Shown here: positions 4,657 to 27,073 of the stretch, one piece after another
Layout of the letters: each line of letters starts with the position of its first letter
Numbering within the stretch: position 1 is the first letter of the stretch
NCBI GenBank assembly: GCA_965240325.2
Contig: OZ251225.1
Span: forward strand, 3,410,001-3,474,000
Direction of reading: 5' to 3'
Length of the DNA stretch: 64,000 bases
Source: Rebecca billardiae RCC1528
Taxonomy: Eukaryota > Protista > Haptophyta
Program-made: the position numbers and the translations under genes
The notes under the pieces: model-generated
Told to the model about the DNA's origin: nothing
Database searches by the model: none
What the model saw: the letters and a program-made list of their open reading frames with translations, nothing else

Positions 4657-6897
4657 TCAATCGTCACCAGCATCGTCATCGGCGGCGGCGGCGCCCCGCG
4701 GTCGCTTGTGGCCGGAGCCGCCGCCGCCGCGGCGCACCTCGTAGAACTGCGGCGCAATCTCGGTCAGCCACTCCGGCTCGATCTTGCACACGTCGACCAT
4801 GGCCTCGTCGCCGGTCGTGAGCGTCTGCACCTCGTGAAACACCACCCACTCGGGCGGCGCGCGGTGCAGCACCGAGCGCGGGTGGATCACGAGGCGGCGC
4901 GCACTCCGCACGTCGCGGTAGCTGTTGTCCGTGTGCCGCCGCGCGGCGTGCGGGAAGAAGCCGCGCACGATCGTGCGCCGCAGCCGGTCGGTGTCCGAGC
5001 CGCACGACTCGCGCGCCACGCCGAAGCGCTTGAGGAAGCGCTCAAGCTGCGCGCGCACGTGCGTCGCGCGCGCGAGCACATGCGCGTCGAGCCCGCGGCG
5101 CGCCGCCCAGCGCGGCGCGCGCCCGCGGCGCTCCCACGCGCGGAGCACGTTTGCGAGCGTGACGTGGTCGCCCTCGTACACGGCGAAGTGCGCGCGCGCG
5201 CGCTCCTGCGCGCGCTGCGTCCCCGCGGCCCACACCGACTGCACCGACACGAGCGCGGCCACGTCGAGCGCCTCGCGCGCGCAGCCCTCCGCCTCGGCGC
5301 CGAGCAGCGCGCACGAGAGCATCGGCGAGGTGGGCAGCTCGGCCATCCGCTCGCCGAGCGGCGCGGTGAGCCGGCCGGCGTCGTCGATCGCGCCGAGCGC
5401 GTACAGCAGCTCGAGCGCGACGGCGAGGTGCGCCGCGGGCGGCGGCGTGGGCAGTTCGAAGCGCGCCACGTTGTCCACGCCGAGCGCCTTCAGCTGCAGC
5501 ACCAGCCCTTCGAGCGCGCACCTTTGCACGTCCGGCGCGGTCGCGGCCGCGAGGCCGTCGTGCGCGCCGCGCGTGTACAGGTGGTAGCACACGCCCGCGC
5601 GCGTGCGGCCGGCGCGGCCGGCGCGCTGCTTCGCCGCGGCGCGCGAGATCGGCGCGACCACCAGCGCCTCCCGCCCCGAGCGCACGTCAAAGACCTGCTG
5701 CTTGACAAAGCCGGAGTCGACCACGAACACGATACCGTCGATGGTCACCGATGTCTCCGCGATGTTGGTCGCGAGCACGACCTTGCGCGAGCCGCGCGGG
5801 GCGGGGGCGAAGGCGGCGAGCTGCGCGTCGCGCGAGAGCCCGCCGTGCAGCGGGACCACCGCGAGCCCGAGCGCGCCCGCGCCGCGGCCGCCATCCCTGC
5901 CGCCGCAGCCGCCGCGCCCAGCGGGCTTTTCCACAGCCGGGCGGAGCGCGCGCTCGCTGGCGTGCGTCTCGCGCGCGTGCTGCGCATCCGCCAGCATGCG
6001 CGCGGCCGCGTCGATCTCCTGCTGGCCGGTGAGGAACACCAGCACGTCGCCGCCGCCGGGCTGCTCCTCGTGGATGGCGAGCACGGTGCGCACGGCCTCG
6101 GTCACGTAGTCGGCGCACGGCGCGCTCAGGTAGCAGCGGTGCACGGCGTGCGCGCGCGCGCCGCTCACCGAGAGGATGCCGACGGGCGGGACGCGCCCGG
6201 CGCCGGCGGGCGCGGGCGCGCGGGTGCCGCCGTAGAACTCGGCGAGCTCCTCCGCGTCGAGCGTCGCCGACGCGATGATCAGCCGCAGCTCCCGCCGCCG
6301 CCGCTGGACCTTCTTGAGGAGCGCGAGGCACATGTCGGTCGTGACGCCGCGCTCGTGCGCCTCGTCGACCATGATGACGGCGTAGCGGCTGAGCAGCGGG
6401 TCCTGCAGCATCTCGCGCACGAGCGCGCCGTCCGTCATGTACTTGACGCGCGTGCGCTCGGGGTGCACGCGCACGTCGAAGCGCACCGCGTAGCCGACAG
6501 CGCCTTCGCCCACCGCCTCGCCCATCTCGTCCGCGACGCGCTCGGCGACCGAGATGGCGGCCACGCGCCGTGGCTGCGTGCACGCGACGAGGCGGCCGCC
6601 AGCGGTCCAGCCCGCCTCGTGCAGGTACTGCGGGATCTGCGTCGTCTTGCCGCAACCCGTGTGCCCGACGACGATCGTCGTCGCATGCGTCTCAACCATG
6701 TACAGCAGCTCGCGGCGCAGCGCAAACACGGGCAGCGCGAGGCGCTGCTGGGTGAGGCTGAGGCCCGTGCGCGGGTTGTAGAACGTGCCATGCTCGCCTT
6801 CGCGGGCCCGGTCGAGAGCGCCCGACACGGCCGGCCGCTGGCTGCCCGGCTGCCAGAACAGGTGCTTCCTGTCCGCGGGCTTGGCCGCGGCCGCCAT
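4657..6897 (-). CDS. DHX35: DEAH-box ATP-dependent RNA helicase DHX35
   Basis: N-terminal FWQPG...YNP..LSLTQQRLALPVF typical of DHX35; motifs GHTGCGKTT, TQPRRVAA, DEAHER, SAT, TNIAETSVT, QRAGRAGR; HA2/OB C-terminus. Confidence 0.92.
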   Translation of the reverse strand: MAAAAKPADRKHLFWQPGSQRPAVSGALDRAREGEHGTFYNPRTGLSLTQQRLALPVFALRRELLYMVETHATTIVVGHTGCGKTTQIPQYLHEAGWTAGGRLVACTQPRRVAAISVAERVADEMGEAVGEGAVGYAVRFDVRVHPERTRVKYMTDGALVREMLQDPLLSRYAVIMVDEAHERGVTTDMCLALLKKVQRRRRELRLIIASATLDAEELAEFYGGTRAPAPAGAGRVPPVGILSVSGARAHAVHRCYLSAPCADYVTEAVRTVLAIHEEQPGGGDVLVFLTGQQEIDAAARMLADAQHARETHASERALRPAVEKPAGRGGCGGRDGGRGAGALGLAVVPLHGGLSRDAQLAAFAPAPRGSRKVVLATNIAETSVTIDGIVFVVDSGFVKQQVFDVRSGREALVVAPISRAAAKQRAGRAGRTRAGVCYHLYTRGAHDGLAAATAPDVQRCALEGLVLQLKALGVDNVARFELPTPPPAAHLAVALELLYALGAIDDAGRLTAPLGERMAELPTSPMLSCALLGAEAEGCAREALDVAALVSVQSVWAAGTQRAQERARAHFAVYEGDHVTLANVLRAWERRGRAPRWAARRGLDAHVLARATHVRAQLERFLKRFGVARESCGSDTDRLRRTIVRGFFPHAARRHTDNSYRDVRSARRLVIHPRSVLHRAPPEWVVFHEVQTLTTGDEAMVDVCKIEPEWLTEIAPQFYEVRRGGGGSGHKRPRGAAAADDDAGDD

Positions 6898-6991
6898 CGT
6901 TGCAGATCTCCGCCTCGCTCGAGCCGCGAGCGCTCCGCGCTGCTGCGCTGGGTACTGCACGTGTTCGGTTTTTATTCGACGAAAATCAAGG

Positions 6992-8368
6992 ATGGCGGCG
7001 GTGCCCTCGCGGCGAGCGCGATGGCCGCACGTCATGCTGCTCGTGCTGTGCCCGACTGCGCGCGCGCCGCTTGGCGCCGGCGCCGAGGAGGCGGCGAGCT
7101 GCAGCAACCCCGCCGACGCAGTGGTCATCACGTGCCACGGACGCTCGGGCTCGACACTGACCGAGCGGATGTTTGACCTCAACAAGGCGGCGTACACCTT
7201 CTACGAGCCCCTCCGCCCGTGGGATCTGGCGCACTGCTACTCACACCACCTGCGGGACAAGGCCCTCGCCTCGACGGCCGTGGCGGTGCTCAGCTGCAAC
7301 CTCTCCCACCGCGTGCCGATCCAGTGCCCCTGGCACCGCTGGCTCGCGCCGCGCGCTCTGAGCGCCCTTACCCCCGAGCTGATTGAGAGTGAGCTCGCGA
7401 TGAACGCGAGGAAGCGCTCCGAGCAGATCGAGTACCGCAAGTGGGCGGCGCAGCTGAGGCAGATGGTCGAGACGGCTCCGGACTGCCGACGCGCGCTCGG
7501 CGCGTGCGGCTCCGCCGTCGCCGTGAAGGTGGTGCGCCTGAGCGGGCTGCTCGACGTGCTGTACGCCGAGTGGCGGCGAGACCAGGCGGCCAGGCGGGCG
7601 GCCGCCGCGCAGCGCGGCACGCGCCGGCGCATCGTGTTCGTGCACGTCGTTCGGGTGCGCGCCGGCGCGCGGCTCGCGTGGCAGCGACAGCGGCGCATGG
7701 GGCTGCGCGCGCCGCGCGACGCCACGGGTGCCCACGCGCTGAGCGGCGCGACCCGGCGCGCGCGCGTGCGCGCGCGCGCGCCGCCGCCTGTCACGCTCGC
7801 CCGTGCGGCGCAGGACCCGCGCGCGCTGCTGCACTCGCGCATCAAGGTAGGCTGGGGCATGCCCAAGACGAGGCGGCCGCCAGCGGTGCAGCGCTGGGCC
7901 AAGAAGATCTGCTCGCTCACGCTGCTCGACATGCAAACGGGCCAGTCGCTCAACACGAACGCGAGCCTGCCCGCCGGCGCGGTCGCGGCCGGGCGGCGCG
8001 ACGTGTACGTGCGCGTGCGGTACGAGGACCTCGTCACCGACCCGATCGGGCAGGCGGAGCGGGTGTACGGCGTGCTCGGCAAGCCCGTGCCGGCGGAGGT
8101 AAGCGAGTTCTTCCGCGCGGAGGTGCTGCGCTCGCAACGGCCCGGGCGCTCGCTCAAGTGGGTCGAGGGCGCGTACGCGACGGGCCACGAGAGGCTCAAG
8201 CGCAGCCCGATGGAGATCATGCGCGCGTGGCGCTCCGAGCTGAGCCCTGAGCTCGCGACAGCCGTTGAGCGTGGATGTCGGCAGCTGATGCGGGTGCTCG
8301 ACTACGAGCCCCTGTCGCCCCTTCCGCAGTCGAGGGCGCGGTCCATGGCGATGCAGACTGTGAGCTGA
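6992..8368 (+). CDS. carbohydrate sulfotransferase (CHST/GlcNAc-6-O-ST-like); intron 7655-7813
   Basis: 5'-PSB motif GRSGST, FYEPL, VKVVRL, 3'-PB motif VHVVR|DPRALLHSR restored by removing a 159-nt GT-AG intron, and VRYEDL; N-terminal hydrophobic segment. Confidence 0.85.
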   Translation: MAAVPSRRARWPHVMLLVLCPTARAPLGAGAEEAASCSNPADAVVITCHGRSGSTLTERMFDLNKAAYTFYEPLRPWDLAHCYSHHLRDKALASTAVAVLSCNLSHRVPIQCPWHRWLAPRALSALTPELIESELAMNARKRSEQIEYRKWAAQLRQMVETAPDCRRALGACGSAVAVKVVRLSGLLDVLYAEWRRDQAARRAAAAQRGTRRRIVFVHVVRVRAGARLAWQRQRRMGLRAPRDATGAHALSGATRRARVRARAPPPVTLARAAQDPRALLHSRIKVGWGMPKTRRPPAVQRWAKKICSLTLLDMQTGQSLNTNASLPAGAVAAGRRDVYVRVRYEDLVTDPIGQAERVYGVLGKPVPAEVSEFFRAEVLRSQRPGRSLKWVEGAYATGHERLKRSPMEIMRAWRSELSPELATAVERGCRQLMRVLDYEPLSPLPQSRARSMAMQTVS

Positions 8369-8816: not shown

Positions 8817-11800
8817 ATGGAGCGCCGTCCGTCGCTGCGGACGCGGCGACTGTCTGCGACCGCCTTAGGCCTAGTCTCGTGGCGGTCGGAGCCCAGCCTG
8901 GAGCAGCTCTTGCTCGTCACGGACCCGGGGCCTGACCCAGACGATGTGAAGGTGCGCGCGCGCCAAACTGCCGCACAGCCTGCAGCCGCCTCTGGCAGTG
9001 CAGCATGCATTTGCGGGGCGGAGGCGCGGCAAGGGGGCGCTCGCCGGGGCACGCGCGTCCACTGGACTCACCACGGTGGTACGCGCACCCGCCGTGCCCA
9101 CCTGACGCGCCCGCAGGCACTCGTGATCGCCGCGGTGCTCTCGCACGAGAAGCAGATCGACCTGCGCGCCGTCATCGCGAATGGCGGCCAGCAGCCGCGC
9201 GAGCGCGCGGCGCTGGCCAGGTGCATCTTGGATCAGATGGGAGAGCACTCGATCCCCGTCGGCGTCGGCTCAGAAGGTCGCGCGTACGACGCACAGCCGC
9301 ACGAGTACTCGCTGGACGGCTTTGATCTCGTCGACCGAGCGGCGCTGCCGGACGGGCATGAGCTGATGCTGCAGACGCTGCGCAGCGCGCCGCCGCTGGG
9401 GCTCACGCTCGTGTGCATCTCTTCGCTGCGCGACCTCGCCGACGTGATGGACGCGCACCCCGACCTCGTCGTCGAGAAGGTCAAGACGGTCGCCATCATG
9501 GGCGGCCTCGAGCCGTGCGACAGCGCGCCGTCCGGCTGGCGGCCCGACACGAGCGTGAACAACGAGTTCGACCCGGAGGCTGCCGCGGCGGTGTACGCCT
9601 TCTGCTTCGAGCACGGTGTGCCCATGGCCATCGTCTCGCGACACGCCGTCCCGCTCCTGCCCATGCAGGTGCGCGCGCAGCCGCGGGCTGAGAGCGGAGT
9701 GCGACCGCGCCGCGCGCGCGCGCGCGCGCCGCCCCAAGCCGTGCGCCGACGCTCACCCCGCGCCGCGCGCCCTGCCGCGCGTGCGCCGCGCGCCCGCGCC
9801 CGCGCGCGGCGGGCAGCTCGCAAAGTCCTTCGCCGAGCGCACGGAGTGCCCGCTCATGCGCTACCTCGCCGACGCGCAGTTCCTCGGCCTCGAGGGGCTG
9901 TGGAAGAAGCTGTGCGCGGGGAAGCTGCCCGCGCGCTGCACCAAGCAGTGGTACTTCGAGACGTTCTGCGGCGTGGGCGCGGCGCGGTTCGCCGCGCGCG
10001 GGTACGAGGCGCTGGACGAGGACGAGGACATCGTCGCGCACCTCAACGGCTTCGTCAAGCCGTACGACGTGATCTGCATGATGACGGTGCTGCCGGCGAC
10101 GCGCGCCTACTTCGCCGAGTTTGGCGGCTCCAAGTTCGAGCACAACGGCGCGGAGCACCTGCTGCTGCTCGAGCCGGAGCACACGATCGACGTGCAGTAC
10201 GTGCTGCACCTGCTTCGCAACACGTACCACGCCGCCGTCCTCGCCGTCGCCGAGGCGGCCGGGCTGCCGCGCGCGCGCGACGCGGACTCGCGTCTGCGCG
10301 CGTCGGTCAGCCTGGCGAGCGGCACGGCGCACTCGGCCATCACGCTCGCCACGGCGTCGGCCTCGCGCCAGTTCCGGGTGGACCAGTCGCCGCCGCTCTC
10401 GCCGTGCTCGCCCGGGTACTCGCCGCTCGGAGGCACCTCGCCCGGCGTCGGCGGCTCGCCGTGCGGCTCGCCGCCGACCTCTGCTCACGGCGCGTCGCCG
10501 GGCCTCGGCTCAGCGGAGCAGAGCGAGGCGCAATCGCAGGGCGGAGACAGCGAGCGGCGCGGGAGCGAGTGCAGCGAGCGGCGCGGGAGCGAGTGCAGCG
10601 GCGGGGCCGAGCATGCGAGCGGCGGCAGCGCACTCGCTGCCGGCGCCGAGCTGACACGCGCGCAGCTGCCCGCGGATGAGGCTGGCGCCGACGGCGGCGG
10701 CGCGGGCGGCGGCGCGGCTTGCTCGAGCGGCGCCGGCGGCGCGGCCGGCGCACAGGCTGATCCCGGCTCTTTCGGGCTGGGCTGCCGCGCTCGCGCGCGC
10801 TGCGAGAGCAGCAGCAGCCCCCTCTCCGACCGCAGGCGCAGCGGCAACGCCCCCGACCTCGCCCCGAACCCGACCGGCATCTCGGGCGAGCGCGTGCTGA
10901 TTCGGCCGGCGCCGAGCGTCGCGCCGCCCCTGCCCACCGACCTGTCGCCGCTGCGCACGCCGCTGCGGGCTGCCGATGGCTCGCTCGGCGCGCGCCGGCC
11001 CGACTCGCTGCGCGTGCCCCCGCGCACACGGCGGCGCAGCGGGCTCGCCGAGGGGAAGGAGGAGGGCGCGCGCGAGGGCGGCGGCGAGGCTCGCGCGCGG
11101 CGGCGCGGCGCGCGCCACGCGCGCTCGTCGTCTGGCCTGCCCTCGCCCGGCGGCGGTCTCTCCTCGTCCGAGCTCTCGAGCTCGTCGGACACGGGCGGGC
11201 CCTCGTCGCCGGAGGTCCTCGCGCGCCGCGCCTCGCGCGGCGGCGCGCGCGCGCGTGCCGCCGCCGCCGCCGCCGCCGCGCCGAGCGCCGACCGAGCAGA
11301 GGGGCAGCAGCTGGGGGCGGCGCCGCCCAACGGCGAGCCGCGGTGGGCGCAGCCTGCGCCAGGGCTCCTGCTCCGCCGCTCCGTCTCCGACCTCGGGCGG
11401 CAGGCGGTGTCCGACCTCGGCCGGCTGGGCGCGGTGCGCACGGCGACGCGCTTCGTGAGCAAGCTCACCATCGCCACGCAGCCGCTCGGCGGCGGCTCCT
11501 CCCGCCGAGGCCGCGGCGTCGCTGACTACCTAGCGCGCGCGCTGGACGACGCGCACAGGCGCGACGCGCGCGTGACGGCGGCCACGTCCGCGCTCGGCGG
11601 CGCGCTGCTGCTGGTCGCGCTCGGGGCCGAGCTCGCGTTCTCGGGGGCGCGCGCCGACGCGGCGTGCGCGGCGCACGCGCCGGGCGCGAGCCCCGCGCCG
11701 TCGTGCGACCGCGCCGCGCTCGGCGGCGCGAGCGTCGCGGCCGGCGCGGCCGCGGCGCACGCGGCCCTGCGTCTCGGCCGGCTGGTGGCTCTGGCGCTGC

Positions 11801-13776
11801 TGCTGCTCTCGCTGCGGCCGCACGAGGGGCACGCGGTGCGCGTGCGCCGGTGCGCCGCGCTCGGCGCGGGCGGGGCCGGCGTCGGCGCCGCCATGGCCGT
11901 CGAGCCCGCGCGCGCCGCCGCCGCGCTGGCGCGCGCGGCGCTGGGCGGCGACGGCGCGGCGCGCGGCGCGCGCCTCGGCGCGTGCGCGGCGGTGGGAGCT
12001 GCCGAGCACGTCACCGAGCTGATGGTGTGCCTCGGCGCGGCGCTCGCGCTCGGCGCGGACAGCATGGGGCTGCCCGAGCGCCGGCGCACGCGCGTGGTCC
12101 TCGGCCAGCTCTGGCGCTCGCTCGGCGCGTGCGCGATCGCCAACGCGTGCGCCACCTCGCTCGGCGCGCTCGCGCGCGCGGCGCTCTGTGTTCGCACGGC
12201 GCGCGGCGCGGCGTGGGCGTTGGCCGCGCTCGCGGCGAGCGGCGCGACCGCGCTGCTCGGCTCGGCCGCGCTGCTGCCCGCGCTGCAGCAGGCGCTGCCC
12301 TCCGCGCTCGCGCGCGCGACGGGCGCCGCCGGCCTCCGCGCCTCCACCGCCGCGCTCATCGGCTTCGGCACCGCGCACGAGTGTGAGCCTGACGAGGTGG
12401 TCGCTGAGGCGGCGCTCTCGTTCAAGGCTGTCGCGCTCGACGAGCAGACGCTGCAGCAGCTGCCCGTGCTGCAGCGCGCGCCGGGCACCTCGCTCTCGCC
12501 CACGCTCACCACCGAGCGCTCGCGCGCCGCCGCCGCGCGCCGCGCCGCCGCCGCGCAGCACGAGTGGCAGCTCGGCTCGCTCGGCGCGCCCTCGTGGCGG
12601 CTGCTGCTGAGTGTCCCTGCCGGCCTGCTGGCTGAAGCGGCGGCGGACGGCGCGGCGCGGCTGCGCGGCGCGATGCTCGGCCTCGCGCTCGGCTGGCGGG
12701 ACGACGGGGCTGGCGCCGGCGCGGCGGAGGGCGGCGCGGCGGACGGCCTCGCGGCCGACAAGCGCGGCCCCACCGCCGCCGCCGCCGCCGCCGCCGCTGC
12801 CGCCGGGTGCAGCCTGCCCGGCACGCCGGGCGGCGCCGGCCCGCGCATGGGCCGTCGCATGAGCGCGTGCGCGCACCTGCCGCCGTCGGCTTCCTCGCCC
12901 TCGGCGCAGGTGCTCGCGGCGCCGCCGTTGCTGCAGCGCGCGTCGAGCGACCTGAACGCGCTGCCGCCGTCCGAGCGGCGCGCGCGCATGTCCGAGGTGC
13001 GCATGCCGCTGCCCGCCGCGACGGGCGGGCCCGCCGCCTCGTCGGCGCGCGCGCCGCCGCCGATGCCGAGCCGCGAGCGCGTCGACGCATACGTGGTGCA
13101 CTCGTGGGACGACGACAGCGAGACCAAGCTGCGCGCGCTGACGCGGTGGGCGCGCGGCTTCGAGGGCGCGCACGGCCGGCCGCCGCGCGTGTGGCTCGAC
13201 GCCGCGTGCGCCGACCCGAGCCTGCTCTCCGTCGAGCGCCTGTCGCACGTGCCCGCGTACATGGCGCGCTGCCGGCGGCTACTCGTGCTGATGGGGCCGA
13301 CGCTCGCCGACCAGCTGTGGGCGGTGGCGGAGCTCTTCACGTGGCGCGTGATGGGCGGGCGGCTGGAGGCGGTGGAGGTGGTGCCCGTGACGAACGACGC
13401 GGCCGAGCGCGCCGCGGTGCTCGCCAGCCTCGACGCCTTCCACGCCATGTGGGCCAAGGCCCCGTCCGCGCACTCGGCGCGGCCACTCGTGCAGCTCGTC
13501 GAGCTGGCGGGCGTCTCACAGTTCAACGAGGTCGTGCGCGGCTACATGCCCACCGTGCGCGACGCGCTCGCGGCGGAGGCGCGGGCGGCCGCGGCGGCCG
13601 AGAGCGCGCGCGCCGCGCGCGCACCGGCGGGCGCGGCGTCCTCGCCGCTCCCCCAGCGGGCGTACCCGCAGGGCCAGAAGCCCTTCGCCGAGCAGCGCAC
13701 CGTCGGCGCCGACGCCGACGTGTCGTCGCTCGTCGCCGTCCGACCCGACATCAAGATCGTCGTCGGCAACCAGTGA
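8817..13776 (+). CDS. fusion protein: inosine-uridine nucleoside hydrolase-like domain + low-complexity linker + multi-pass membrane region + TIR/HET-like C-terminal domain; introns 8952-9116 and 9669-9816
   Basis: NH motifs VTDPGPDPDD, VIANGG, LVCISSLRDL, IMGG, NNEFDPEAA, KPYD. The 148-nt intron joins ORF 8769 to ORF 9616 in frame (PMQ|LAKSF). Hydrophobic helices lie at ~11590-12370. C-terminal YVVHSW...VWLDAAC...VPAYMARCRRLLVLMGPT..QLWAVAELF. Confidence 0.8.
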
Positions 13777-24227: not shown

Positions 24228-24718
24228 GACAAGGGCCGCGTATGTTCTGACCGGATCCGGGGGCTCGCGCGAAAGACGGGAGTGCCGGCTGTCAGCGAAC
24301 TGCCACTCATCCGATGACGACCTCTGCGCCAGCCAGATCTTGTCCGCTCGGCGCCAGCAATGCAGCTTCCCGAGTGGCTGCTCTTCCGCCGGAAGAGCAG
24401 CCGGAAGAGCACGGGCTGCACGACGATGCAAGTCATGGCTCATGGTGTAAATATGCTCTAGCCCCCGACACAAGACCGCTGCGGGGAGTCCGTTCAGCAA
24501 GGCAGCGCGCACCAGGGAGCTGAGGGGAACTCGTCTGGATTCTGAGAGGATGGTCGCGGCCCGCAGAGCGCGCGCGCACGCGCTTGAGAGTTGGGACACA
24601 GTGCTGCTGTCGTTACGACCGGGAAGAACGGTGGGGAAGATGGGCGCCCTTGCGGTTGGGTGAGATCACAATCTTGTCGCCGGCGGATAGCGGCGCCGCG
24701 TCCTATGTAGCATCAATC

Positions 24719-27073
24719 ATGGGCGGCGTGACCAGCTCGCTCCGCCCGCGTCATCGTGACATCCACACGCTCGACGATGGGGAGGACGTGGACATCTCGA
24801 CGCACGTGCGCCTGCTGCCCATCGCCGCCGTTGCGGAGTCAGGCCTGCTCGAGCATGCGCCGAAGCCGACCATCTTCCCCTTTGCGCAAGCGCCGGCCTT
24901 CGCGCTCATCAGCTACAAGCAGGCGCGCGACCTCGATCTCGGCTTGCAGCGGCTGTCGGTGAAGGATGTGCAAGCGGCGTGCGCCACGGCGCAGGCGCAC
25001 GGCGTGTCACATCTCTGGATCGACGCGCTGTGCGGCGCCCCGCCGCGCTCCCGCCCTGGCGACACCGGCCCCGCGCGGTACTCGCACGAGCGCTTCCTCG
25101 CCAACCTACGGCAGTCGCTGGAGTACGCCAAGCTGATCATCGTCGTCGGCGACGGCGGCGCGACCGAGCGGGCGTCGTGGAGCACGCCTGAGTACCTATG
25201 CCGCCTATGGACGCGTTACGAGCTGCGCACGGCCCTCAAGGCCGACAAGCTTGTCCCGGCGTCGGACGAGCACTTTGAGGCGCTCGTCGCGGGCCACGGC
25301 TTTGGCGTGCGCTCGACGCTCCTCTTCGCGGACGTGACGAAGCGCGTGCCCCCCGCGCTGACGCGCTACCCGAACCTCGTCGCCGCCGCGGATGTGATCA
25401 CGCTCGTCGCCGTGTACCTGGCCTCCCTGCTGAGCTGCCTCACCCTGTATGTGATGATCACTGACCGTGACGAGTACCTGTCCAGCTCTGAGGTGCTGGC
25501 GGCGCTCGAGCTGATCGCGCTCGTGGTCCCCGTGTTCGCGGGGCCGCTCGGGCTGCGGCTCTTCGTGCTGCGGACGTTCCGCTTCGCGCTGAACGAGACC
25601 GCGCAGGTGCACTCGCTCCGCCGCGCGCTCGCCACGCGCAACATGCCCGCGGCCCTCCGCCTCGCCGAGGCGGATCCATACCGCATGCCAAGCTACGAGC
25701 CGTGTGACCGCCTGATTGTCGCCGACCTGATGCAGAAGAAGCACGGGGACGAGGCGGCGGCGGCCAAGTACTGGGCGCACGCGTTGCTGCTCGGGCTGAG
25801 CGCGCACGCCGGCCTCGCCGCGATCACGCCGTCGGGCCAGCACACCCTGCGCGCGGTGCTGGAGGAGGCGAGCACCGTCGGGAACGCGCGCTGGGCGGCG
25901 GTGCTGCTCAGGCACCTCCCGCACACCGCCAAGGAGAGCTTCGCCCGGGCATCCTCTGCCGAGGCACGCGCGCGCGCAGGCACGGCCGACGACTTGGACA
26001 AGCTGCTGAAACGCCAGGCGCGCGATGGCCGGAGCCTCCCCGCGCCTGGCGAGGACATGGACGAGGGATGGGCCGGGCGGCGCATCGAGCTGCGCGCGCT
26101 CGACGCGTGGGGCGCGACAGTGTACGTGGACATGGCGCGCGGCTTTGGCACGATCAAGGTGGGCAACGCGATGCTGCCCGTGCAGCGCTCGGCGCACGCG
26201 CCCGAGTGGCAGCTCGAGCCCGACGCGATCCTCGAGCGCTTCGAGCGCAGTCCGACCGTGATGGTCGAGCACGCGCGGCACGGCATCACGCTGCTGGCGG
26301 ACTGCTTCTTCATCGCGGTCGCCGCGCTCACTGCGCTCACGCTCGTGGACGACTTCATCGACGTGCGCGCGGTCGAATACAACACGGGCGTCTTCTCGTA
26401 CGACAGGCTCGCGCCTGTGATCGACGCGCTGCTCGCGCCCTGCCTCGTGTGCTGGGGCCTGGGGGAGGCGTCCTCGATCGCCCTCTCGCTCGCACCCGGC
26501 GCCGTCACGCACGGCCAGGGCCGCCAGCTCCTCTCGCGCCGGTACCACGGCTGGGGCGGCTGGTTCTTGCTGATCGAGGTTGACCTGTTTGTGCACGTGG
26601 TGGCTGCTGTCTTCTCCGGCCGGCCGGGCGCGAGGATGGGCACCATCGTCGGCGAGGCGCAGACGGACACGGACGTGCTCTTCGAGGGCTTCTGGGACCA
26701 GGTGGCGTTCGTCGCGCTGCGCGTCGCCCTGGTTGGGCTGCTCTTTGTGCCCTCGCGCCTCGTCGAGCTCGGCCGCTTCCTCACGCTCTCGCCAGGGTGG
26801 CGGCGGCGCGGGCGTGCCGGCATCATCGCCGTCGCGATGACGCTGGCCAACCCGCACTACACGGGCCGGCTGCTCTCGGCGGACGACGAGCTCGTCGACC
26901 CGCCTGCCGCGGAGTGGGCAGAGGAAAGCAGCCGACCTGCCAGCCGCATTCGCCAGCACGCTGCCAGGAACGGCCAGGGCAACGAGCTCACCGCGTCGCA
27001 TGACGTGAGCATCGGCCTATTTCCTTCGTCGGATGTGCTTCCCGCTAGGACACTCCCTGCCAAGGCTGGTTAG
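24719..27073 (+). CDS. multi-pass membrane protein with N-terminal TIR/HET-like domain
   Basis: 785-codon ORF with no obvious intron. FALISYKQ...HLWIDALC...YAKLIIVVG...EYLCRLWTRYEL, followed by about 6 hydrophobic helices. Start MGGVTS is a possible N-myristoylation site. Confidence 0.75.
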   Translation: MGGVTSSLRPRHRDIHTLDDGEDVDISTHVRLLPIAAVAESGLLEHAPKPTIFPFAQAPAFALISYKQARDLDLGLQRLSVKDVQAACATAQAHGVSHLWIDALCGAPPRSRPGDTGPARYSHERFLANLRQSLEYAKLIIVVGDGGATERASWSTPEYLCRLWTRYELRTALKADKLVPASDEHFEALVAGHGFGVRSTLLFADVTKRVPPALTRYPNLVAAADVITLVAVYLASLLSCLTLYVMITDRDEYLSSSEVLAALELIALVVPVFAGPLGLRLFVLRTFRFALNETAQVHSLRRALATRNMPAALRLAEADPYRMPSYEPCDRLIVADLMQKKHGDEAAAAKYWAHALLLGLSAHAGLAAITPSGQHTLRAVLEEASTVGNARWAAVLLRHLPHTAKESFARASSAEARARAGTADDLDKLLKRQARDGRSLPAPGEDMDEGWAGRRIELRALDAWGATVYVDMARGFGTIKVGNAMLPVQRSAHAPEWQLEPDAILERFERSPTVMVEHARHGITLLADCFFIAVAALTALTLVDDFIDVRAVEYNTGVFSYDRLAPVIDALLAPCLVCWGLGEASSIALSLAPGAVTHGQGRQLLSRRYHGWGGWFLLIEVDLFVHVVAAVFSGRPGARMGTIVGEAQTDTDVLFEGFWDQVAFVALRVALVGLLFVPSRLVELGRFLTLSPGWRRRGRAGIIAVAMTLANPHYTGRLLSADDELVDPPAAEWAEESSRPASRIRQHAARNGQGNELTASHDVSIGLFPSSDVLPARTLPAKAG

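Follow-up and report, generated by a model that had tools for sequence, protein, structure and literature searches.

Gene structure of the locus

The window analysed here is a stretch of 64,000 nt from the haptophyte Rebecca billardiae RCC1528 (assembly GCA_965240325.2, contig OZ251225.1, positions 3,410,001-3,474,000, forward strand), and our subject is a gene on its + strand at 8817-13776 that encodes a nucleoside hydrolase-like domain, a membrane domain and a predicted TIR-like domain in one polypeptide. As obtained by sequence reading and scripted splicing, the gene consists of three exons (8817-8951, 9117-9668 and 9817-13776), with the ATG at 8817 and the stop codon at 13774-13776. Intron 1 (8952-9116, 165 nt) and intron 2 (9669-9816, 148 nt) are both of the GT-AG type, with the donor AG|GTGCGCGCGC and the acceptor CAG. 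The spliced coding sequence of 4647 nt is translated into 1548 aa, in agreement with the preliminary description of this locus, in which two GT-AG introns and one polypeptide of about 1550 aa had been proposed. All motifs quoted in that description were found in the translation, namely TDPGPDPDD (residues 35-43), NNEFD (193-197), PYD (311-313) and the series HSW, WLD..C, LLVLMGPT and LWAVAELF (1324-1403).

Both splice junctions align without gaps to the homologue P0001, a protein of 1072 aa that was retrieved by a search with the C-terminal domain; its open reading frame fills an intron-less JGI contig of 3288 nt and also carries PF01156. Intron 1 is in frame and stop-free, yet it is missing from all homologues, while intron 2 changes the reading frame. 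When the DNA was scanned in six frames with the hydrolase-family profile, profile positions 1-17, 16-200 and 189-347 were located at 8904-8954, 9114-9671 and 9784-10263, respectively. The pieces are thus consecutive over the three exons, and a single hydrolase domain is split exactly by the two introns. The ten bases of the donor that follow AG are identical in both introns (8952-8961 and 9669-9678). This suggests from the sequence that the 5' splice-site consensus in the R. billardiae genome may be unusually extended and GC-rich, which would aid gene finding.

The GC content of the window ranges from 0.57 to 0.80 per 2 kb, and long chance open reading frames occur on both strands. In the frame of exon 3, the third-codon-position GC was 0.82-1.00 per 120-nt interval over all 3960 nt, both low-complexity linkers included, whereas introns 1 and 2 showed no codon-position GC periodicity. 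Therefore, the long frame is coding and is not a chance reading frame of a GC-rich genome. No further introns were seen in exon 3 when GTGCGC donor-like sites and codon-position GC were scanned, and the coding periodicity was never lost.

The same order of three modules was present in transcripts of relatives labelled complete in MMETSP (P0020 and P0161), and in proteins annotated as hypothetical from Diacronema lutheri (10 loci or more) and Pavlovales sp. CCMP2436. The named sources are all pavlovophyte haptophytes. Since the transcripts and genes of relatives encode all three modules, the locus is one gene and not two, as the preliminary description had assumed. Hence, 8817-13776 was confirmed as one gene with three exons, from a haptophyte of the pavlovophyte type whose DNA is very rich in GC.

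Hydrolase, membrane and TIR-like domains

The hydrolase domain starts in exon 1 (residues 1-45), has its core in exon 2 (residues 46-229, including N193-N194 and D197) and is completed by its C-terminal half in the first part of exon 3 (9817-10266, residues 230-379). Exon 2 alone matched Pfam IU_nuc_hydro (PF01156) with E=2e-14 (54.4 bits, cutoff 34.2). Among solved structures, exon 2 matched XopQ (E=1.4e-12) and RihA (1.7e-6), and XopQ was the sole match of the hydrolase part of exon 3. Residues 1-400 of P0001 likewise matched solely XopQ structures (4KL0, 4P5F and 7JLU), over the whole domain and with E~1e-21. The HLP clan is defined by the Ca2+ motif DXXXDXDD, which replaces the canonical DXDXXXDD (PMC11685791). 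The motif of the window protein is D36-P-G-P-D40-P-D42-D43 (8922-8945), i.e. DXXXDXDD, and of the 11 family members in which the N-terminus is present, 10-11 show it unchanged. By its sequence, the N-terminal domain is thus assigned to the XopQ/HopQ1-like (HLP) clan. A canonical (group I) inosine-uridine nucleoside hydrolase (IU-NH) was ruled out by the motif and by the best matches to XopQ, so that the nucleoside-hydrolase fold claimed in the preliminary description stands while its canonical IU-NH identity does not. A clade of algal HLP proteins from heterokonts and haptophytes was published in 2018, with no mention of TIR (PMC6019455).

XopQ was reported to cleave the ribose-ribose O-glycosidic bond of the TIR product 2'cADPR, a cyclic form of ADP-ribose (ADPR), to yield ADPR in a highly efficient and specific manner; it was inactive on nucleosides, 3'cADPR, canonical cADPR and pRib-AMP, left ADPR intact, and thereby blocked TIR signalling in bacteria and plants (bioRxiv 10.64898/2026.06.15.732069). 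The bond attacked by XopQ is thus O-glycosidic, which corrects the N-ribosyl bond of the preliminary description. Mutation of two aspartates (D120N/D399N) inactivated XopQ (bioRxiv 10.64898/2026.06.15.732069). Residues were mapped through the alignment with 7JLU, in which the chain index equals the residue number plus 13 and every residue letter agrees. The equivalents of both catalytic aspartates are kept in the window protein as D40 and D313. The XopQ residues said to contact ADPR are D120, Y311, Y398, L345, W361, F366 and H433, and six of the seven have a kept equivalent (D40, Y312, L257, W274, F279 and H343). The three equivalents of the adenine pocket (L257, W274 and F279) all lie in the exon 3 part, together with Y312-D313 (10063-10068) and H343. 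Across 16 hydrolase-bearing family members, the catalytic and ADPR-contact residues are near-invariant. The window domain therefore has in common with XopQ and HopQ1 the PF01156 fold, the DXXXDXDD motif, the catalytic Asp pair and six of the seven ADPR contacts. However, the bacterial effectors XopQ and HopQ1 are soluble and secreted, and carry a secretion region at the N-terminus, whereas the window hydrolase is the N-terminal part of a membrane protein from a eukaryote, is fused there to a TIR-like domain, and has Pro at the position of Y311.

Linker 1 (10285-11529, residues about 386-800) is a disordered, low-complexity region rich in Ser, Gly, Ala and Arg, with short internal repeats and poor conservation. 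Within 10240-11500, the in-frame peptides SERRGSEC and SDLGR each occur twice, along with many stretches rich in Ser and Arg that, judging from their composition, may be phosphorylated. This linker measures about 415 aa in the window protein versus about 95 aa in P0001, and the linkers of relatives are much shorter.

The hydrophobic stretch noticed earlier at 11590-12370 lies inside a conserved six-helix domain of about 300 aa (11530-12450, residues 801-1107), after which comes a conserved juxtamembrane motif; the membrane bundle between the two enzyme-like domains was in this way borne out and extended. A jackhmmer search seeded with the corresponding region of P0001 matched window residues 803-1105 over the full length (E=3.7e-46), and the domain was also matched by a hidden Markov model. 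Because the same search also matched family members that contain no hydrolase, the core of the family consists of the membrane domain plus the TIR-like domain. The AlphaFold (AF2) model of the membrane domain had a predicted local distance difference test score (pLDDT) of 86.8, and presented a bundle of six long helices with the conserved juxtamembrane segment. Relatives have four to six clear hydrophobic segments between the enzyme domains, while the window version is Ala-rich and less hydrophobic. Fold matches of this model were uninformative: the best Foldseek match in the PDB had E 0.19, VIA gave Z<=9.3, which is below the meaningful level for helical bundles, and a fold search of the atlas models gave template modelling (TM) scores of <=0.41. 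A feature search of the atlas with the membrane domain returned no usable match. Because there are six helices and no signal peptide, the hydrolase and TIR-like domains would both face the cytosol, and not opposite sides of the membrane as previously suggested.

The C-terminal domain (13081-13566, residues 1318-1479) follows linker 2, a low-complexity region of residues 1108-1317 (12451-13080), and precedes an Ala-rich tail that runs to the stop codon (13567-13776, from sequence reading). The TIR-like family profile matched it with E=4e-72; a family profile also found the TIR domain of SIGIRR (E=0.006) and, in the TIR domain of TLR15, set WCQYEL against the family consensus RLWCxxEL. Pfam gave no match to the C-terminal region or to the whole of exon 3. 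When 88 relatives were compared with Pfam (TIR models PF01582, PF13676 and PF08937; HET model PF06985), TIR_2 matched 22 of them (best 1.9e-6), HET six (weakly, best E=0.0055), TIR two and ThsB_TIR one.

The AF2 model built from the 88-sequence alignment reached a pLDDT of 96.1 and a predicted TM score of 0.91, with alternating strands and helices. Foldseek returned almost only TIR domains for this model (RUN1, RPV1, MyD88, SPARTA, SNC1, AbTir and SARM1; E from 3e-4, probability 0.99-1.0). VIA, a search independent of Foldseek, gave TIR domains for all of its first 16 matches (Z 9.9-7.8). In the comparison with the atlas models, the TM score was 0.76-0.86 for haptophyte clusters and 0.56 for bacterial ThsB/TIR_2 clusters, and one near cluster is labelled 'heterokaryon incompatibility domain-containing'. 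The WxxxE motif of the window protein is W1397...E1401 (13318-13332), on helix C (model helix 87-98). Of the 88 family rows, 66 keep its Glu, and so do 14 of the 16 members that bear the hydrolase; fewer keep the Trp. The C-terminal TIR-like domain with WxxxE that had been proposed is thus upheld by a TIR-type flavodoxin-like fold in the model and by the top matches of both structure searches. Accordingly we describe the domain, as modelled, as TIR-like and a member of the TIR/HET superfamily, and make no claim of NAD+-cleaving (NADase) activity by this assignment.

The enzymatic TIR domains of RUN1/RPS4/RPP1, SARM1, ThsB, AbTir and SPARTA TIR-APAZ share with the window domain the flavodoxin-like fold and a WxxxE-type Glu on helix C. 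The identity to them is only 10-17%, however, and the window domain has no Pfam TIR match and carries extra C-terminal helices. It is placed after a six-helix membrane domain, whereas the enzymatic TIRs sit on an NLR, on SAM/ARM or on a Thoeris partner. Fungal HET (PF06985) is alike in the blocks (Y/F)xxHSW and WxDxxCxD and in a hydrophobic strand followed by WxxxE, but HET matches are weaker and rarer than those of TIR_2, there is no allorecognition context, and the window domain is attached to a membrane domain. In the atlas clusters, the TIR-like domain also occurs with heme NO-binding (HNOB) in haptophytes, with TPR repeats in diatoms and, in one cluster, with DUF285. In marine protists, many different input domains seem to share it as their output module.

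Relatives, origin of the fusion and neighbouring genes

An exhaustive search of representatives found the C-terminal domain in 1813 clusters. We collected 180 proteins, 63 of which match the hydrolase profile, and 57 of these 63 also carry the TIR-like domain. The window protein is a member of a lineage-expanded, multi-copy family. A quick tree was built from 88 TIR-like domains; the 27 rows that bear the hydrolase were all placed in one group of 59 rows, which was separated from a group of 29 rows without hydrolase by a branch with 100% support in the Shimodaira-Hasegawa-like approximate likelihood ratio test (SH-aLRT). Many of the apparently hydrolase-less rows of the 59-row group are fragments, and for this reason the sequences suggest, but do no more than suggest, that the hydrolase-TIR fusion arose once. 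Ten long family members without hydrolase gave no match to Pfam. The closest relative, P0002 (65-70% identity), is uninformative on linker 2, being a fragment whose 5' part is unrelated. In P0173 (947 aa, Logan assembly) a permuted order was observed, i.e. membrane domain, TIR-like domain and then hydrolase (481-824), and either gene calling has joined two neighbouring genes here or the paralogue is truly rearranged.

The preliminary description had regarded the architecture as new. This holds for the searchable literature, as no paper found by our literature search describes it, while the public databases already hold the multi-copy family, with its sequences named as hypothetical or 'IU-NH domain-containing' proteins. 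The only paper found that combines PF01156 and TIR is the XopQ preprint, and neither algae nor eukaryotic homologues are mentioned there.

A second long open reading frame at 24584-27073 (+) encodes 829 aa. By eye its N-terminal block resembles HET/TIR (WIDALC ... RLWTRYEL), and hydrophobic helices come after it, so that the domain order is reversed. It was detected neither by Pfam nor by the TIR-like, membrane and hydrolase family profiles. The upstream neighbour at 6785-8368 (+) is sulfotransferase-like (Sulfotransfer_3, E=4e-8; Sulfotransfer_1, E=5e-7) and has no evident link to the fusion gene.

Proposed function and alternative explanations

TIR domains make nucleotide immune signals in bacteria, in plants and, by recent reports, in animals. 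Because the conserved fusion keeps both the XopQ-type active site and the TIR Glu, we tentatively read the window protein as a membrane-anchored enzyme that may both make and break (or process) a TIR nucleotide signal within one polypeptide, and judge this reading the likeliest, though somewhat short of an even chance. Judged from the alignments, both catalytic residue sets are intact in the window copy. In the proposed mechanism, the membrane domain would anchor the protein and probably sense or cluster. Clustering would switch on the TIR-like domain, whose cleavage of NAD+ would yield a nucleotide of the cyclic-ADPR type. That product would then be hydrolysed by the tethered XopQ-like domain, a presumed Ca2+-dependent ribosyl hydrolase, in the way reported for XopQ and the conversion of 2'cADPR to ADPR. 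Such hydrolysis might keep the signal local, brief and quiet at rest, or might convert it into an active species. The coupled production and processing of an NAD-derived signal suggested at the outset is strengthened by this analysis, in that the hydrolase is of the XopQ/HopQ1 type, whose bacterial representatives reportedly cleave 2'cADPR, with both activities still read from the sequence.

Bifunctional enzymes that make and break one second messenger are found in the CD38 cyclase/hydrolase, in GGDEF-EAL proteins and in Rel/SpoT. The window protein would follow the same logic of making and breaking in one polypeptide, but the folds and the chemistry are unrelated and the likeness is an analogy only.

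A nearer comparison is offered by the multi-transmembrane and receptor-like TIR proteins of Gephyrocapsa huxleyi, in which N-terminal transmembrane helices are followed by a TIR domain with a conserved Glu, similar to the layout of the window protein (PMC12489294). Their expression changes upon virus infection, and they were proposed as virus-responsive signal producers; it is by layout that we liken them to the window family. However, no hydrolase domain was reported for them, and the word 'nucleoside' is found nowhere in PMC12489294. By analogy with these virus-responsive proteins, an immune or stress role in haptophytes is plausible for the window family.

Several points weigh against the maker-breaker reading. 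The C-terminal domain of the window protein has no Pfam TIR or HET match at E<=1, and its matches in the PDB are moderate (Z<=9.9, TM 0.36-0.48). E1401 is equated with the catalytic Glu by alignment and by the position of the model helix; within the hydrolase-bearing subfamily the WxxxE Trp is variable (9/16) and the Glu is missing in 2 of 16 members. On the hydrolase side, the position of XopQ Y311 is P224 in the window protein, and one family member, P0013, has a degenerate hydrolase site. The activity of XopQ on 2'cADPR is known solely from a 2026 preprint, and earlier work gave XopQ other substrates, 2',3'-cAMP/cGMP, as cited in PMC11685791. The role given to the membrane domain is a guess, as it has no known relative, and the expression and splicing of the gene in R. 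billardiae are argued by comparison with relatives, a search for RNA runs of this genome having returned none. Both enzyme activities, their coupling, the topology and the immune role are all things that we infer.

One alternative is a protein whose C-terminal domain is a non-enzymatic TIR/HET assembly or cell-death adaptor, and whose hydrolase acts alone on ordinary nucleosides or on nicotinamide riboside, perhaps for salvage at a membrane. A scaffold role is common among TIR domains, and the missing Pfam TIR match of the window sequence, the weak HET matches in the family and the variable WxxxE Trp would all fit such a protein. We consider it unlikely, however, since 14 of 16 subfamily members retain the Glu, nucleosides were reportedly not cleaved by XopQ and HopQ1, the hydrolase motif is of the HLP type and not canonical, and a conserved TIR-like fusion would be of no obvious use to a salvage enzyme.

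The conservation of the ADPR-contact residues, and the fact that XopQ was crystallised with bound ADPR (4P5F), could also mean that the XopQ-like domain senses or receives a ligand. On binding an ADPR-type nucleotide from other TIRs, infection or stress, it would turn the activity of the membrane domain or of the TIR-like domain on or off. A family core of membrane and TIR-like domains with variable added domains (e.g. HNOB sensors) agrees with this, as the hydrolase stands in the usual place of input domains. Yet the catalytic Asp pair and the full Ca2+ motif are near-invariant, which is expected of an enzyme and unneeded by a pure binder, so that a sensor is improbable in our judgement.

It is still harder to credit a two-step depletion effector, the other option raised in the preliminary description, in which NAD+ is destroyed by the TIR domain upon activation, its products or other ribosyl compounds are further degraded by the hydrolase, and the infected cell is arrested or killed by abortive infection. 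The catalytic residues are kept in both domains, and NAD+ depletion by TIR NADases is known from SARM1 and bacterial systems, as cited in PMC12489294; but XopQ was reported to be highly specific for 2'cADPR, sparing ADPR and canonical cADPR, and there is no sign of toxicity in the data at hand. Finally, an artefact of two or three neighbouring genes or of a chance reading frame in DNA of 75-80% GC, which the abundant chance frames on both strands, the low-complexity linkers and the comparative basis of the R. billardiae gene model might favour, is largely refuted and hardly credible, given the same three-module order in complete transcripts and annotated genes of relatives, the third-position GC of 0.82-1.00 through the linkers, and the sharing of one stop-free frame by the three domains.

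Returning to the maker-breaker reading, its strongest form would be a self-contained membrane maker-breaker of a 2'cADPR-type messenger, and the first endogenous eukaryotic XopQ-type hydrolase wired into TIR signalling; we regard this form as rather doubtful at present. How hosts themselves switch off TIR signals is poorly known. A conserved natural fusion joins a TIR-like domain to the sole enzyme family for which cleavage of a TIR signal was reported, and so connects the two activities without recourse to the work on bacterial effectors. It predicts specific and readily assayed substrates for an uncharacterised algal gene family, which also offers soluble, non-pathogen XopQ-type enzymes for comparative enzymology. 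It is also a pointer to immunity or stress signalling based on nucleotides in haptophytes, whose virus defences matter to ocean ecology and are almost unstudied at the molecular level. If true, the fusion would serve as 'Rosetta-stone' evidence that XopQ-family enzymes generally act on TIR products, that haptophyte TIR-like domains make such nucleotides, and that the bacterial XopQ effectors imitate a form of regulation which some eukaryotes already apply to TIR signals of their own.

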